This document shows positions 5,332-24,874 of a stretch of 64,000 bases of DNA, piece after piece. The stretch comes from Amoeboaphelidium protococcarum X5 (lineage: Eukaryota > Fungi > Aphelidiomycota). Below the pieces are notes generated by a model. That model did no database searches. It was not told where the DNA came from and saw nothing but the letters and a program-made list of their open reading frames with translations. Within the stretch, counting starts at the first letter, position 1. Each line of letters begins with the position of its first letter. The DNA lies in NCBI GenBank assembly GCA_023515725.1, contig JALDTO010000213.1:380280-444279 (forward strand). Direction: 5' to 3'. Both the position numbers and the translations under genes were made by a program.

Positions 5332-5418
5332 AAATTGTTGATACTAAATCTTTAATCTTTATAATTTTAATTCACCTTAACGTCATTAAATTCATCAAAC
5401 CAAGTGTTAAAAGAGTGT

Positions 5419-7716
5419 TCATAGCATGAGCAATGCACAGCTAACCACCGCCATGACCAGAGATGCTGATACAGTTCCAGCACTGCTAGCCTCCAAAGAC
5501 TTACTTGAAGAAGTGTCGATGCTTGATCCGAGCTCACTCACCGCCACAGGGGATGGTGTCTTATATGCAGCTGCATTCTTGGTGGAGGTTGTGTTAGCAG
5601 AAGTGGTTGCATTAGGAGCCTTGGCTTCACTGCCCTTGATTGGTACAGGAGTGTATTTGGTGGTATCAACTTCATCGCAGTATGGAATGTCCTATTTCTG
5701 GGATGGAGCGGATGGCTGACCGTAACCAGGAGTTGCAGGGGAAGCTGCAGGCTTAGGAGCTGGAACTGGAGCGCTGGTAGCTGGAGCAGGTTGTGGACTT
5801 GCAGTCGGTGGACAAGGAGTATTGGAACTTGGTGCATTAGATGGAGCAGGCACTGGATGAGGGGCAGGCACAGCAGGAGCTGGCTATGGTGCAGCAGGTG
5901 CAGGCTTTGGAGCAGGCTATGGAGCTGCTGTTGGTGGACATGGGACAGCCGGGCTTGGCACGTTGTAAGCAGGAGCCGGCTGTGGAGCAGCTGGAGCAGG
6001 CTTTGGAGCAGGAGATGGAGTTGCGGTTGGAGGGCAAGGAGTAGTTGAGGAAGGTGCCTTATATGCAGGAGCAGGTTATGGAGCAGCAGGTGCAGGCTTT
6101 GGAGCAGGAGATGGAGTTGCAGTAGGAGGGCAAGGAGTAGTTGTAGATGGTGTCTTATATGCAGGAGCAGGTTGTGGAGCAGGCTATGGAGTAGCAGGAG
6201 CAGGTTGTGGAGCCGGCTGAGGTGAAGCAGGCTTTGGAGCTGGAGATGGTGTCGGAGTTGGAGGACAAGGAGTGGTTGAGGATGGACCATGAGCAGGCGC
6301 AGGCACAGGATGAGGAGAAGAAGGCTTATTATAAGCTGGAGCGGAAGGTTGTCCAGCAGGTGGTGACTGATAAGCAGGACTTGGCTTCACCTAGGATGGA
6401 GTTGGAGAAGGAGTCTAGTAGGCAGGAGCTGGGCCAGGAGCAGGGGATTTGTACGCTGGAGCATTCGCTTAATTGTCACTGCCAGTTGATGGAGAGGCAG
6501 ATGCAGCCTTGTAGACCTGCGCAGGGACGGGCTGATTGTGAACAGCCTTTGCAGGTACATTGACTTCAGTAGATGGCGGATTGGTAGCAGGAGGAGCAGG
6601 AGCTGCAACAGTGTTATTGATCTTATATACCACCTAGAGAGAGTCAATAGCCTCACCAGCCTTGATGCGGAAGCCAACAATGATTTTCTACTTGGCATCC
6701 TTGCGGTCATCATCGAGAGATGGCCAAGTGTCGGCAGTATGGTCGAAGATGGTACTATCACTCTACAGATAGTGACCAATAGCATTGACGGACTGTATAG
6801 CAGTTAGGACATCACCAGCATAGAACTGAACCTTGTTAAAACCCAACGGAGCGGTCATAATTCTTCTCTGAGGAGAGTCTTATTGCGGAGAGACATCAGC
6901 CATAGGAAGAGCTCTCAAAGGGTCGCAACTACCAAAACACTGAGACATGTAACCGTCAGAACATTTGATCTCCAAGCTTTCGATACGGTTACCAATGTTG
7001 GAGATAACATCAGTTACATAGCCATTGTTCGGGCAAATGAAAGGATTCGAGTTGTCAGCGAATTAGCCACCAGTACCTTTTCCATACACGTGAGTACCAT
7101 CGATTGCAGGACCATCAGCCAGCTTAAATGGTGGCTAAGGCATCTTTAAACCGTGAAACTACTCAGTCTTGTTTTCGCGATACATTATCTGCATCATGTT
7201 GACATCCAGACCACTCTTGATCTTGAATCCAGTGATGATCTTCTATGTACCACCATTAGCTTGCTAATCTTCAACAGATGGCCAGGTCACCTCTGGATTG
7301 CTATTTCTATCGGCAGCCACGAGCTGAGTAGCAGAATTGACAGACTGAATAGTTTCCACCAGGTTGGTGTACTGAAACACCATGGAGTTGAAGCCCTTCT
7401 CGCTGTACATGGTCATCATCAGCGGAGTGTCCTTGTTTGGCTTGGCATCACCCTGAGCAAATTTCCAGTCGTTTGCCTAGCATGAGCCATAGCAAGGAGA
7501 CGCTGTGCCGTCAGAGCAGAAGACGCGAATGTTCTTGATTCTGTCAGCTACAGTAGCGTTTAAACGCGTCACATACGCATCGCCAGGACACTAGAAAGGA
7601 TTACTAGTGGCAGAGAATTCACCCCAAGAGGAGCCATAAGTTTGAGTGCTTTCAGCAGCAAAACTGAACGAGGCCAGGAATGCTCCAATCAATGATATTT
7701 GAGTTGCGACTTTCAT
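5419..7716 (-). CDS. Secreted, probably GPI-anchored surface protein: signal peptide, two tandem jacalin-like (beta-prism) domains, Pro/Ala/Thr-rich stalk; 765 aa
   Basis: Signal MKVATQISLIGAFLASFSFA. Two homologous units: NPFQCPGDAYVTRLNATVADRIKNIRVFCSDG...KIITGFKIKSGLDVNMMQIMY and NPFICPNNGYVTDVISNIGNRIESLEIKCSDG...KIIVGFRIKAGEAIDSLQVVY. C-terminus SSAGTVSASLVMAVVSCALLML then TGA. Confidence 0.8.
5720..6460 (-). repeat. Coding tandem repeats of the Pro-rich stalk (unit TTPCPPTATPSPAPKPAPAAPQPAPAYK..)
   Basis: Near-identical blocks such as ggctttggagcaggagatggagttgc...ggagggcaaggagtagttg recur at about 5999 and 6095, with a variant at about 6230. Confidence 0.85.
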
Positions 7717-8223
7717 ATTAATGGAAGGCTTTTCTATAAGTCTATAGTTGTTGAAAGATTAGCACAAGATATAATGCTTCTTTTCAAAATTAATTGATTA
7801 AAGAAGAAGAAGGAAGCTATCAGATGCAAACTAATAAATTCACTCTTGTTCATATGATTGCAAACTCGAGGTACTACGTGGGCAATCGACGTTACCACCG
7901 GCCCAATCAAACGCTGCCACGCAAAACAACGAGATATGATTGCACGAGGATTGCTTGTTAGCCAATGAAATTTATTACACGCACTGCCTCACGTTTGCAC
8001 GATGTACCTGCTGGATGACTTATGCGAGGAACTGTGTTGCAGTTGACGAAAAATGCAGCTTGTGCGATCAATGTCGCTAGATGCTATCGACATCAAGTGA
8101 ATTTTCTCAAGGGATCGTCATCATATCGATTGTACAATAATAGACCCATTCAGACAGCAGTATATTTATCCAAATACAGATATCAGAATAAGAATCTTGA
8201 TCTACAATTCCAAAAATAGAGAT

Positions 8224-8296
8224 TGCTCCAACTCAGAATTGAACTAAGGACCTCCTCATTACTAGTGAGGCGCAACTACCGCTGTGCTATTGGAGA
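8224..8296 (-). tRNA. tRNA-Thr(AGT), with genomic T1:C72 mismatch
   Basis: Reverse complement TCTCCAA TA GCACAGCGGTAGTTGCG CCTCA CTAGTAA TGAGG AGGTC CTTAG TTCAATT CTGAG TTGGAGC A, followed by a TTTTT Pol III terminator. Confidence 0.88.
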
Positions 8297-9029
8297 CCGA
8301 ATTATCTCAAAAATTGGGGTTTTTGACAGACTATATACATAATAGGGACAGACGGGAAGCTATATACAAAGACTGAGAGTCGGGCAGAGACACCAACAGA
8401 AGTACAGGAAGATAAAATATGTTAATAAGATAAACACTCTATTAACACGTTAAGTGGATGAAATCAATGTTCATAAAAGGCGCGCATATATACAGCAGGT
8501 ACTTGCCGAAATGTCAATGATGACAAAGGCGCGCACTTAAACAATGTTGATCATCTAAGCCCCACAGAGTCATCTGTTGATAATTGATCGACGCGTGTGC
8601 TAACAACGCTAAGAAATTTTCAGGCAAATCATATACGCAATTAGAATAAACGAGAAGATGTACGAGACTTTAAACAGAGACAACAACAGAAGCACAAAGA
8701 AATATGTTTAGGGAATCTGGGATATCACCATTCAAGATAATACTGCAACGCAGGCAGTCAACTCTATCCCCACCTTTTAATAAGTCCTAAATGTTTAACC
8801 TTAATAATTGAGCCCCTTGATCTAACGACTTAAGTTCAGCACAAAACATTAAAAACGATCAGTGATCTCTTTTTGGTTATTGGGGAAAAAAGTATTTGGC
8901 CCGATCGGGCTCGCTTATTCGGCCCAATAAAACAATAGCGATGCGGCCCTTTTATTCAGCACTAATTATTATATACTGTAGTGACATATGAAAAATTAAT
9001 CTTCATCTTTTGTCAATATGAATCTAAGG

Positions 9030-9300
9030 TCGGGTAGATAGTATAATCACTTATGATCCTTTAGGAGATGGTAATTGCTTGTCTAGAATGATATTATACA
9101 GCATGTATGGTACTGAGAAGAAGTGGAAGGAGGTGAAGAACTTGTCATTGAAAAAAGTCAAAGAGAACAAGAGTGTCTATTGTGACATTAGGTATGAACA
9201 CTCGTAGGGGGAATATCTAGAACTAGTGCGTAGTCTTGCAACTGATGGTGTTTATTTTGTGAACTCGTTCGTTTTACTTACCGTATCCTACATTGTTAAG
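9030..9300 (+). pseudogene. OTU-like cysteine protease (deubiquitinase) domain fragment
   Basis: YDPLGDGNCLSRMILYSMYGTEKKWKEVK matches the OTU GDGNC.FR....YG....W..VR motif. The His-box half is not found and no clean start is evident. Confidence 0.65.
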
Positions 9301-9361
9301 AATATCGACAACGAGCACTTTATTCAATATGTGATGATGATCAGACATATGAGGAAATTTT

Positions 9362-9595
9362 GGTGAAGATGTGGCCTGGGCCTTTGCGCATTACTCTTAT
9401 TTTTGGTTTGAGAAGGAGAAGTACCAGTAAATGATTGTCGATATTCAAGGCTTTAAGTGTCATTTTACAGATCTATAAGTATGCACTGTGAATGGTACCG
9501 ATTGCAGTATTGGCAATATGGGTTTGCCAGCTATTGTGAAGTTCTTCGTCATGCATTAATGCAATAAGATTTGTAAAGCTTTGCACTTGGATCTC
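9362..9595 (+). pseudogene. Alpha-kinase (eEF2K/MHCK family) C-terminal lobe fragment
   Basis: AWAFAHYSY...MIVDIQG.....TDL(TAA=Q)V......GNMG..AIVKFFVMH(TAA=Q)CNKICKAL, the alpha-kinase motifs including the Zn-binding H.CN..C. A TGA lies just upstream in this frame. Confidence 0.8.
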
Positions 9596-9916
9596 TATGA
9601 TATTTCACCTATTGTCATGGAAAAGATTGTGGAGAATTCTCTCTTGATGGATAAATTTGAGTTTACTGAGTTTGGATCTCCAGTATAGGTCGCTTCTAAT
9701 TCTCCCAAAAAGTAGAAGACATCATTGAACTCGGATGTCTCCAGAACATCTGTGTCTGAATAGGTAGAAGTTAATAATCTAGCGACGCAAGATTTGCAGA
9801 TCGTAAAGGAGGAGTCATATCTTAGATTGGTGGATCCGACTGTTAAAGACATTCGTCCGTCTAGTAGAAGACCAAATACGCGTGCCAAAAATGATGTCTA
9901 GAAGAAATCGCTGATG

Positions 9917-10084
9917 GACTGGGTCGAAGTTTTTGCTCCTGTTATCAAATTTGTCACTATTCGGATTATGTTGGTCTTAGCAGTGCTGTTCTGTTGGAAA
10001 ATCAGTCAGTTTGATGTAAAGACGGCGTTTCTTAATTCCAAGCTGAGAAAGCCTGTTGACTGCACAACTTTAACAGAGGATTGA
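9917..10084 (+). mobile_element. Ty1/copia reverse transcriptase fragment
   Basis: DWVEVFAPVIKFVTIRIMLVLAVLFCWKISQFDVKTAFLNSKL matches copia RT (FAPV...TIR....QMDVKTAFLNG.L). Truncated on both sides. Confidence 0.85.
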
Positions 10085-11138
10085 ATGTTTTGGAGTTCGT
10101 ATGGAGTAAGGAATTTGAGTAAAGTCAAGATAACAATTGCAATGAGAAGATTTTAATAATTCCAAGAGAGATAGTCCGTCCCGTGCTGAGAACCCGAATG
10201 CGTATTGGCGTCAGCGTCAAGCGTCTACCGACTCTGATGCAGACGATGATCAAGAATCGCGTCTAAGTAAAGTCACTGATTTCTACCGCGAAACAATGGC
10301 AAAAGATGATTACATATCTACTTTAATCCCACATCTAACATGGTCGCGTCGTGATAACCTGGATTTCGATGTCGAAGATTAATCAACACAGGCCATGGAC
10401 TATATGTTAGCTGCCGCCCAATGAAGATGCAACAGAGACATATATGCTGATAACTGGCGTCGTAGACAAAATTGAACCCCAAATGGTTCCTCCAAACAGC
10501 CTGGAAAGTAACGCTTACCGGCACGGATGTGCTGTTCCCTGATAACACTCTTCCTGGTTGGCTTGAATCTCTAGCAGCGCTTCATTCAATACGCGAGCCG
10601 TTTCCGTTGAATCCAGCCAGCTCCTCCCGTCCTTTGTACTCCTTACCTCTGGACTCAGATTTCCCCGTATTTTAGCCGAGTACAAAAGACTCAACTCCTG
10701 CCAATGTTTCAAACTGTTGGAAGTGATGTCCAGAACGTCTTCCGCTGAATCGAAAGGGGAAAGTTTTTGATACTTGAATGATAGACATCAGCCACTCGGC
10801 CTTTACAATTGATATTTCTTTGTTTTACTTCATTGATATACAGTATATCTACAAATATAATAAAAATAAGAAACGTCAGCTTATCATACTGCTGTTGATA
10901 TATATTCGTGTGAAGTGCTTTAAGCAGCATTCATCTGTATTATTAAAATATTATGATAATAGTAGTGAGGAGTAATATACTTACTGCAGTACTGTAACTT
11001 TATAAAAAAATTTCCTTAACGCATTCTACTGTTCAAACGCTCACATCGCACCTATTTTCAATAAACTTCATGATTTTGAATCTTCTACAGTGTCCAAGTC
11101 ACTACAAAAGTACGCGCGCTTTTCGATAAACCACGGAG

Positions 11139-23482: not shown

Positions 23483-23555
23483 TCTCGGTTAGCTTAGTCG
23501 GTAGAGCGCAGTGCTAATAACGCTGAGGTCCCAGGTTCGATCCCTGTACCGAGCA
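23483..23555 (+). tRNA. tRNA-Ile(AAT), with genomic T1:C72 mismatch
   Basis: TCTCGGT TA GCTT AGTCGGTA GAGC G CAGTG CTAATAA CGCTG AGGTC CCAGG TTCGATC CCTGT ACCGAGC A, followed by a T-run terminator. Confidence 0.9.
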
Positions 23556-24874
23556 TATTTTTTGAATTCTTGATATCCTGATGTTGATAAACTTTTAGTT
23601 GTGTTGTAGTATCAAATTTCAACCTTGGATCCAATTTTTACTGCATTATTGAATGTTTCGCATCAGTTTCCATTCTCGCGAAAGAATGTGAGAATTTATT
23701 TTTGGGAATTTCATGCATTCGTGAAACGGTTGAAAGTGGCTACACGTCCATTTTACAACTATATGTATCAGCATCGAAGGTGGTACTTCCCATGGGTTGA
23801 TGGTTCAGTACTGCTCCCGTGATAAAAGCGAGCCTAGTGTCATAGCGTCGTAGTAAGTGCTTTGCCATCTTCTTCACTCAATACACCTCCTGGACTATGG
23901 TAAATTGAGACGCGACGCGAGTAATAAATTTATAAATATAATGAACGAATAGACTTTATTTTACTGTTCAAGTCAACACTTTATAATGCCATTAAAGTCT
24001 TTCTAATACCTAGAACTCGGTCTATATATCGAGAGGTATGAACGTGAAATGGCATCAAGGAACTCATACATCGTGACATAAGATTAGACTCAACTCAAAT
24101 GAAATGACATCAACTTCTTCAGGGACTCTTCCGCTTTGAATCTACCGCCCTGAATCTAAAGTTTTACAGCGTTTTGTGGACGCTATTTCCCCTTTTCTCT
24201 CTTTCTCTTTCTATTCTCTCAGCGCGTAACCAGCCTGTTTAGACAAGTCGCGGGCGTCTTACAGGACTATCTCCCTAGCTATCAAGCTTGTCATCTATGA
24301 AAAACGAGTACGCTGAACAAACAGCTGGCCAAGTTATTGAGTATATTCAAAGGAACATAACACGCTTTGTATTGTTACTTTCGGTCGGGCAAATTAAAAT
24401 TTGATAACAAGAACATATCAGTCTGTGCAGATGCAGCGTTAAAGGCCTTTGGGATAAGGATGCTAAACTAAGTTTCACGCAAAGTAAACTCAATGAATAT
24501 GAGAATTGAGTTAGGTGATGGAAGAGGAGGATTATCAAACGTAACACTATCGCCATTTAAACACACGATTAATCCTAATAATTGGGCGAATCTAGTCACC
24601 AAAATCGGTATATTTATAAGGTTCAAAGCCAGGTTGGTAGAAATCCTCCACCACCTCCAGTGCAAAAAAGACCTCGTGAGCAAGATGCTGATGATGAACT
24701 TGAGAGACTCAGAGTAATTTGTAAGGCACTGGAGGATCACTATGAATACCTGGAGAAGGAGGTGAAGAAGTGGAGAGATCTATATCGTAAAGGATGTTGG
24801 TTGGCAGAAAGAGAATCCGCATCGCTCCAAGTAAAGATCCAAGATTACTGCAGTGATGGCCAAGATTATATCAT

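Follow-up and report, generated by a model that had tools for sequence, protein, structure and literature searches.

Can a tRNA gene whose first nucleotide has no partner at position 72 still supply a working tRNA, and by what route? The question is raised by a tRNA-Thr gene in a 64-kb stretch of DNA (referred to here as the window, meaning the whole stretch analyzed) from an organism that we take to be the aphelid Amoeboaphelidium protococcarum, a parasite of algae. The genome comprises 23.6 Mb in 346 contigs at ~40% GC, with most loci present as two diverged copies and with open reading frames that are full of in-frame TAA and TAG codons. One of the encoded proteins, compared as a stop-free piece, is 98% identical to the A. 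protococcarum GenBank entry KAI3649278.1. Genome-wide duplication has been reported in A. protococcarum (PMC10608142), as has a genetic code in which UAR codons specify Gln (PMC5304391).

The tRNA genes of the window

Two tRNA genes, Thr and Ile, were identified in the window by both ARAGORN and Rfam RF00005. The tRNA-Thr(AGU) gene (73 nt, positions 8296..8224, minus strand) scores 47.8 bits against the full RF00005 model and the tRNA-Ile(AAU) gene (73 nt, positions 23483..23555, plus strand) scores 49.6 bits; both lie above the gathering threshold of 29 bits with model positions 1-71 covered, and both are full-length cloverleaves. Each is followed by a Pol III terminator visible in the sequence, T5 at 8212..8216 (minus strand), 8 nt past the 3' end of tRNA-Thr, and T6 at 23558..23563 (plus strand), 2 nt past the end of tRNA-Ile. 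The tRNA-Thr acceptor stem is composed of UCUCCAA / UUGGAGC followed by A73, in which pairs 2-7 are intact and U1 (position 8296, minus strand; A on the plus strand) stands opposite C72 (position 8225, minus strand), the presumed template for a repaired G1. In tRNA-Ile the stem is UCUCGGU / ACCGAGC followed by A73, again with pairs 2-7 intact and with U1 (23483) opposite C72 (23554) on the plus strand, and in both tRNAs 1:72 is the acceptor pair flagged as non-standard in the Infernal alignment. The preliminary description of this sequence had noted the U1:C72 mismatch beside a perfect 2-7 stem in tRNA-Thr, an identical defect in the only other tRNA of the window and a somewhat irregular D arm in tRNA-Thr, and all of these observations hold: the first is confirmed by the Infernal alignment, and the second concerns the Ile(AAU) gene found by ARAGORN and Rfam. 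The D-arm irregularity is real and consists of a 1-nt T insertion relative to three other Thr(AGT) copies, seen as a TT at 8274..8275 (minus strand) in the 3' strand of the D stem, where the extra T forms a 1-nt bulge. When contigs of other Thr copies are aligned to the window, one base is missing at 8274, and the bulge is found in the window copy alone. This insertion explains why the window gene scores 47.8 bits as compared with 56.8 bits for its duplicate copy.

A 281-bp repeat (window 8325-8605) lies upstream of tRNA-Thr, at a distance of 28 nt from the 5' end of the gene, and is covered at very high depth in the source run. At least 44 genomic copies of this element were found, at 71-100% identity, nearly all of them located a few tens of nucleotides upstream of tRNA genes included in the census described below, and some of them are paired at a distance of ~5.2 kb. 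The element resembles the LTR of a retrotransposon, one that would insert selectively at Pol III start sites.

Position 8296, whose reads the preliminary description had marked for checking, was examined in assembled contigs, not raw reads, from four runs, which were compared with window 6500-10500. Three of the four runs (X1, X5 and X8) provide a contig over 8225-8377 with zero differences from the window, and the letter at 8296 is the same in all three, with no alternative. These runs derive from different studies: X1 is probably the source DNA, X5 is a biofilm metagenome of 2013 and X8 belongs to another study. A sequencing or assembly error at 8296 is ruled out by the identity of the contigs of these three runs across the gene. 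Run X8, which has very uneven depth and is likely to be RNA, shows only the genomic sequence across the tRNA-Thr gene. Its depth is 290-430 over window 6500-7700 and 4-10 in the intergenic stretch before tRNA-Thr, a contrast which indicates that X8 is probably RNA-seq and that the gene at ~5400-7700 is highly expressed. One of the X5 contigs departs from the window at 64 of 1219 positions (window 9049-10267) while the adjoining contigs are identical; it may represent a second strain in the sample or the duplicate copy of the locus.

The 1:72 pair in nuclear tRNA genes

A genome-wide census of 96 distinct nuclear tRNA genes, representing 39 anticodon families, was assembled from the best 63 Infernal matches, five pattern searches based on the A box, B box and terminator, and the short stretches of sequence around the matches. 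Acceptor stems were parsed by a script anchored on the T loop, the register of which agreed with Infernal in the twelve genes checked. The 1:72 pair is Watson-Crick in 54 genes, G:U in none and mismatched in 42 (44%). At pairs 2-7 combined, 545 of 576 pairs are Watson-Crick, 30 are G:U and a single one is mismatched, a contrast (42/96 versus 1/576) with a Fisher p-value of 1e-38; positions 2 and 3 are never mismatched in the 96 nuclear genes. The mismatches at 1:72 comprise U:C (18 genes), A:A (7), C:C (6), A:C (6), A:G (3) and C:A (2). The defect first described in two genes is thus present in 42 of 96 when the 1:72 pairs are tabulated across the genome.

Mismatches are distributed by family. 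Fifteen families are always mismatched, namely the three Thr families, Phe, Tyr, Trp, both Glu families, Ala(AGC), Arg(ACG, UCG, UCU), Ile(UAU) and both readers of UAR; four are mixed (Ile(AAU), Lys(CUU), Ala(UGC) and Asn); and 20 are always paired, these being all Leu and Ser families together with Gly, Pro, Asp, Cys, His, Gln, Met, Lys(UUU) and Arg(CCU). All nine Thr genes are mismatched, with U1 or C1 opposite C72, and these include all four AGT copies, none of which has the G1:C72 pair that the preliminary description had considered as evidence against its proposal. Likewise, all six Glu genes and every Phe, Tyr and Trp gene found are mismatched, and therefore, as far as the genes found can tell, the cell has no paired version of these tRNAs. 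Introns are present in the nuclear Tyr and Ile(TAT) tRNA genes.

The census is incomplete, as no tRNA-Val gene was recovered among the top 63 Infernal matches or by six pattern searches, one of them aimed at Val; the Val genes may have unusual A and B boxes or T loops. The collection favors genes whose A and B boxes are canonical, and the part of it ranked by Infernal is biased against mismatched genes, so that the figure of 44% is not inflated from that side. Because tRNA gene finders and pseudogene filters penalize mismatched genes, annotation of this genome may under-call them.

Four tRNA genes with the anticodons CUA and UUA are similar to tRNA-Gln and are located at G000:C158:362956-363027 and C200:31431-31502, and at C158:383536-383608 and C200:16432-16504. 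They decode UAR as Gln, and each of them places U1 against C72, in contrast to the G1:C72 pair of the ordinary Gln(UUG/CUG) genes.

Variation on the two sides of the pair

A comparison of 68 gene pairs matched for anticodon and length shows a difference at N1 in 16 of them and at N72 in none. Positions 2-73 are invariant across the four Ile(AAU) genes, whose N1 is G, G, U and U, and the two Ala(UGC) genes likewise differ only in N1 (G and U). The Asn genes have A72 throughout, and their N1 is U (paired), A, A and C. The 3' side is equally stable in families that are mismatched in every gene: C72 is invariant in the nine Thr genes, N72 is constant at A72 in Glu, and Tyr has G72, the value expected of the canonical C1:G72 pair. 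Between duplicate loci, N1 differs in three of 27 pairs, which is approximately the rate of the flanks and roughly ten times that of the gene bodies, and which rests on only two or three independent events.

This asymmetry between N1 and N72 is a prediction of a model in which base 72 is a template and N1 a placeholder, and it is the main argument against an end that is simply unpaired. Two features of tRNA 5' editing are present here: an encoded 5'-strand mismatch among the first three acceptor pairs, found at position 1 only, and a conserved 3' strand with a free 5' nucleotide, for which the N1 and N72 comparison is indirect evidence. The 20 families that are always paired indicate that N1 is not drifting freely everywhere, and constancy of N72 could also result from other constraints, for example if synthetases or end-processing enzymes recognize this base.

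Function of the mismatched genes

The mismatched genes sit on nuclear contigs of ~40% GC and have Pol III terminators, with a run of four or more T residues within 20 nt in 41 of the 42. In an alignment of eight Thr genes, compensatory double changes occur in 12 of 21 stem pairs and 94% of the cells pair, with the 1:72 position unpaired in all sequences. Structural selection and Pol III signals are thus both found for the tRNA genes of the window. At duplicate loci the tRNA bodies differ by 1.1% (22/1982), as compared with 13% (72/540) in the 20 nt upstream, and the mismatch is usually common to both loci; the mismatched state therefore predates the genome duplication and has been carried under purifying selection. 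The census, the covariation and the terminators rule out pseudogenes as an account of the class, and the reservation in the preliminary description that the tRNA-Thr gene might be a pseudogene is contradicted by its structural selection and terminators. Both window tRNAs are functional nuclear genes belonging to a genome-wide mismatched class that makes up ~44% of the genes examined.

A Thg1-like protein as candidate enzyme

A six-frame search of the genome with PF04446 identified four loci of two types, Thg1 and a Thg1-like protein (TLP), each present in two copies. The preliminary description had suggested that extra Thg1 or TLP paralogs lacking a mitochondrial presequence might be found, and a single TLP type, in two copies, does accompany canonical Thg1. 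The TLP loci (G000:C154:724033-725280 and G000:C205:152063-153319) score 47.6 + 20.7 bits against PF04446 and 52.8 bits with the neighbors in frame, against a cut-off of 29.2 bits, and the stop-free pieces of the protein score 23.8, 33.6 and 20.6 bits. Each copy is an intact single-exon open reading frame, 415 aa long in one case and 418 aa in the other, that contains 20 in-frame TAA/TAG codons. Their identity is 93%, and a dS of 0.37 with a dN/dS of 0.084 indicates purifying selection. The RLDG and SDE catalytic motifs are retained, in alignment with relatives and with Thg1, and the Thg1-specific HINNLYN motif is absent. A 49-aa stop-free piece of the TLP detected 75 relatives among 1.8 billion representative proteins, none of which contains HINNLYN. 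The nearest named relatives are TLPs of Polyrhizophydium, Cladochytrium and Gonapodya (chytrids and a monoblepharid). In a quick tree, the aphelid TLP groups with three metagenomic or run-assembled proteins beside the Polyrhizophydium/Cladochytrium/Gonapodya clade, so placed with the chytrid TLPs, and Thg1 forms a distant long branch. The chytridiomycete fungi, the group of these genera, are known for mitochondrial tRNA 5' editing (Laforest et al. 2004, cited in PMC4284800). Contigs carrying TLP homologs from two chytrids and two other relatives contained no tRNA gene, and a search of solved structures with two stop-free TLP pieces gave no meaningful match.

The Cladochytrium homolog has an arginine-rich N-terminal extension of ~95 aa that is free of acidic residues and resembles a presequence. 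TLPs of the aphelid clade, like Thg1, start ~25 residues before the catalytic aspartate, and an upstream in-frame ATG is absent; the contig of one relative extends only ~230 nt upstream of the TLP gene. The TLP thus lacks an N-terminal presequence, which is weak evidence for a non-mitochondrial or dual location. The aphelid TLP also has a Ser/Gln-rich insertion of ~37 aa directly after RLDG..F and further insertions that are absent from its relatives, and its GenBank model is partial (196 aa).

The canonical Thg1 type contains introns and has the HINNLYN motif, and the tRNA-His genes have A73 and no encoded G-1, consistent with the presence of Thg1. The Thg1 gene at G000:C154:17455-18406 (plus strand) has at least two introns, and a stretch of ~19 codons within its reading frame resembles a third, in-frame intron.

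Mitochondrial tRNAs

Contig C346 is mitochondrial, with a length of 28.4 kb, a GC content of 23% and a bacterial-type LSU rRNA, and is separate from the nuclear contigs that bear the tRNA genes discussed above. With only four tRNA genes detected on it by ARAGORN (Trp, Gln, Asn and Tyr), the organelle must import most of its tRNAs. The first three acceptor pairs contain mismatches in three of these genes, namely at 1:72 and 3:70 in Asn, at 1:72 in Trp and, according to our own script parse only, at 2:71 in Tyr. There is also an overlap of a few bases between Tyr and Asn. Judging from these gene sequences, mitochondrial tRNA editing of the chytrid type is likely to operate in A. protococcarum as well. 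Such editing would be sufficient reason to keep a TLP, which weakens the case for the TLP acting on nuclear tRNAs. It is also a system from which a repair activity directed at nuclear tRNAs could have arisen.

Templated repair and its alternatives

The best explanation for the mismatched class, which we put at roughly even probability, would be that N1 of nuclear tRNAs is replaced by templated TLP repair. The encoded first nucleotide would then be a placeholder in ~44% of the tRNA genes examined. Pol III would transcribe a pre-tRNA with a leader, and the unpaired N1 would be removed, either by RNase P cutting one nucleotide further in, at the first real pair, or by a 5'-3' exonuclease trimming the frayed nucleotide. 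The TLP, the sole type here, would then add one nucleotide pairing with N72 (G with C72, U with A72 or C with G72) and so restore the standard 7-bp acceptor stem. With repair in place the encoded N1 would be free to drift, and the pattern seen is the drift expected under N1 repair. The nucleotides that repair would need to supply are G in 30 genes, U in nine and C in three, and since all three are needed, only templated 3'-5' addition, among known mechanisms, can supply them all. The preliminary description had proposed that G1 is installed opposite C72, and this interpretation is partly supported: G fits the genes with C72, but U is also required for those with A72 (Glu, Asn) and C for those with G72 (Tyr). 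Templated 3'-5' addition by Thg1-like proteins is the established mechanism of mitochondrial 5' editing (PMC5041481, PMC3061083, PMC4284800). In its full form the proposal is of a cytosolic pathway in which N1 would be discarded in ~19 anticodon families and rewritten from base 72 by a presequence-less TLP, a scheme as likely to prove wrong as right on present sequence data. The pathway would have been recruited from mitochondrial editing of the chytrid type and fixed via neutral decay of position 1.

Two other ways of mending the pair were considered and rejected. Deamination of C72 (C-to-U) would restore pairing in no more than six of the 42 genes, those with A:C. If the 5' end were shifted to include the -1 base, G-1 would be available in most of the Thr genes with U1, but the other families mostly have A at -1. 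A search of the genome for retro-copied mature tRNA-Thr with CCA found none, and when metagenome contigs were scanned twice by exact pattern for the bodies of the Thr and Ile genes, no match was obtained.

The principal competitor, a serious though somewhat less probable one in our judgment, is that the mismatch is tolerated: mature tRNAs would keep an unpaired N1, or lose N1 and use a 6-bp stem, with synthetases, eEF1A and the decay machinery adapted to this state and no editing involved. Only the terminal pair is affected (positions 2 and 3 are mismatched in 0/96 genes), and this is the pair least needed for helix stability; the confinement to position 1 is accounted for about equally by editing and by tolerance of fraying at the terminal pair. 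Tolerance would also agree with the genomic base being the only one in the likely-RNA run X8, and the single TLP type may serve only the mitochondrial tRNAs, which are mismatched at positions 1-3. There is a precedent for a functional 1:72 mismatch in the bacterial initiator tRNA, in which C1 is opposite A72. Unpaired ends should, however, vary on both sides, and here only N1 varies (16/68 versus 0 for N72), with N72 held at the canonical G72 in Tyr and at A72 in Glu and Asn. What is known of tRNA function also speaks against tolerance, in that the C1:G72 pair of tRNA-Tyr is a synthetase identity element, an exposed 5' end exposes eukaryotic tRNAs to 5'-3' decay, and elongator tRNAs with an open 1:72 pair bind elongation factor poorly in the systems studied.

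Templated TLP repair shares its prediction of a corrected N1 with a further scheme, which we consider unlikely, in which the correction is made by an enzyme other than the TLP, either canonical Thg1 through templated addition of G or C, or some other enzyme. Thg1 is present in two copies, and G opposite C72 is what 30 of the 42 mismatched genes would require; against this, Thg1 selects tRNA-His via its anticodon. Addition of G opposite C is within the in vitro capacity of yeast Thg1 (PMC8127993), but the nine genes that need U opposite A72 fall outside the reported G/C preference of Thg1, and repair of truncated 5' ends has been shown for TLPs and not for Thg1 (PMC3061083, PMC5041481). The idea that the mismatches are base-call errors, pseudogenes or retro-element debris lying beside real genes is very improbable. 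It could draw on the 1-nt bulge in the D stem of the window Thr copy and on the mobile-element remains beside both window tRNA genes, but the same mismatch occurs in 42 genes at separate loci, three assemblies agree at 8296, whole amino-acid families are without a paired copy, stem changes are compensatory, terminators follow 41 of the 42 genes, and gene bodies are 1.1% apart in duplicates whose flanks are 13% apart. For the class as a whole, artifact and decay are refuted.

Templated repair of N1, if true, would be without precedent as tRNA end-editing outside organelles, G-1 addition to tRNA-His excepted. The proven tRNA-repair job of templated 3'-5' synthesis has so far been a single one, mitochondrial 5' editing, and the aphelid would add a cytosolic tRNA function for TLPs, whose cytosolic role stayed unclear after the study of the Dictyostelium protein DdiTLP4. 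It would also be a clean natural case of repair letting genes decay into dependence. If the tRNAs are not repaired, whole families, including Tyr with its C1:G72 identity pair, would function with an open acceptor end, which would be unusual too.

Comparison with known systems

In the literature searched, which did not extend to the aphelid genome paper of 2022, no report of nuclear tRNA 5' mismatches was found, in aphelids or elsewhere. The closest known system is the 5' editing of mitochondrial tRNAs in Acanthamoeba, Dictyostelium (DdiTLP3), Physarum and chytrids such as Spizellomyces. There, as here, the non-pairing nucleotide is encoded in the 5' strand and the 3' strand keeps the correct partner, matching the conserved 3' strand of the aphelid genes; the enzyme belongs to the TLP family, and A. 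protococcarum encodes a TLP whose nearest named relatives are those of chytrids. Mitochondrial editing spans positions 1-3, whereas the nuclear mismatches of A. protococcarum are limited to position 1. It also acts on organelle tRNAs by means of an imported enzyme, whereas the genes described here are nuclear and transcribed by Pol III, the candidate TLP is without a presequence and the editing is putative. As the compartment differs, the nuclear tRNAs of A. protococcarum are not classed as a member of this system.

Addition of G-1 to tRNA-His by Thg1 is the only accepted 5' nucleotide addition on nuclear-encoded tRNAs (PMC4284800). It resembles the proposed repair in adding a single nucleotide and in using an enzyme of the same superfamily, but it places an extra, non-templated G on one tRNA, and the process proposed here would be a templated replacement of position 1 in ~19 anticodon families, with G, U or C. 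A cytosolic TLP, DdiTLP4, is known from Dictyostelium and carries out robust templated repair of 5' ends in vitro (PMC5041481). The substrates found for it in that study of 2016 were 5S rRNA and class I non-coding RNAs and not tRNAs (PMC5041481), and a review of 2019 still gave its function as unknown (PMC6471195). DdiTLP4 is thus a cytosolic TLP with non-tRNA substrates in an organism where 5' editing has been described for mitochondrial tRNAs only, and Dictyostelium was not among the 20 matches of the aphelid TLP for which source names were checked.

The bacterial initiator tRNA-fMet has a functional, conserved 1:72 mismatch that is kept in the mature tRNA, and it is the model for a tolerated mismatch. 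It is a single specialized tRNA in which the mismatch is itself a signal that keeps the molecule away from the elongation factor. In A. protococcarum, by contrast, the mismatch extends to nearly half of the elongator tRNA genes, with an N1 that is not conserved.
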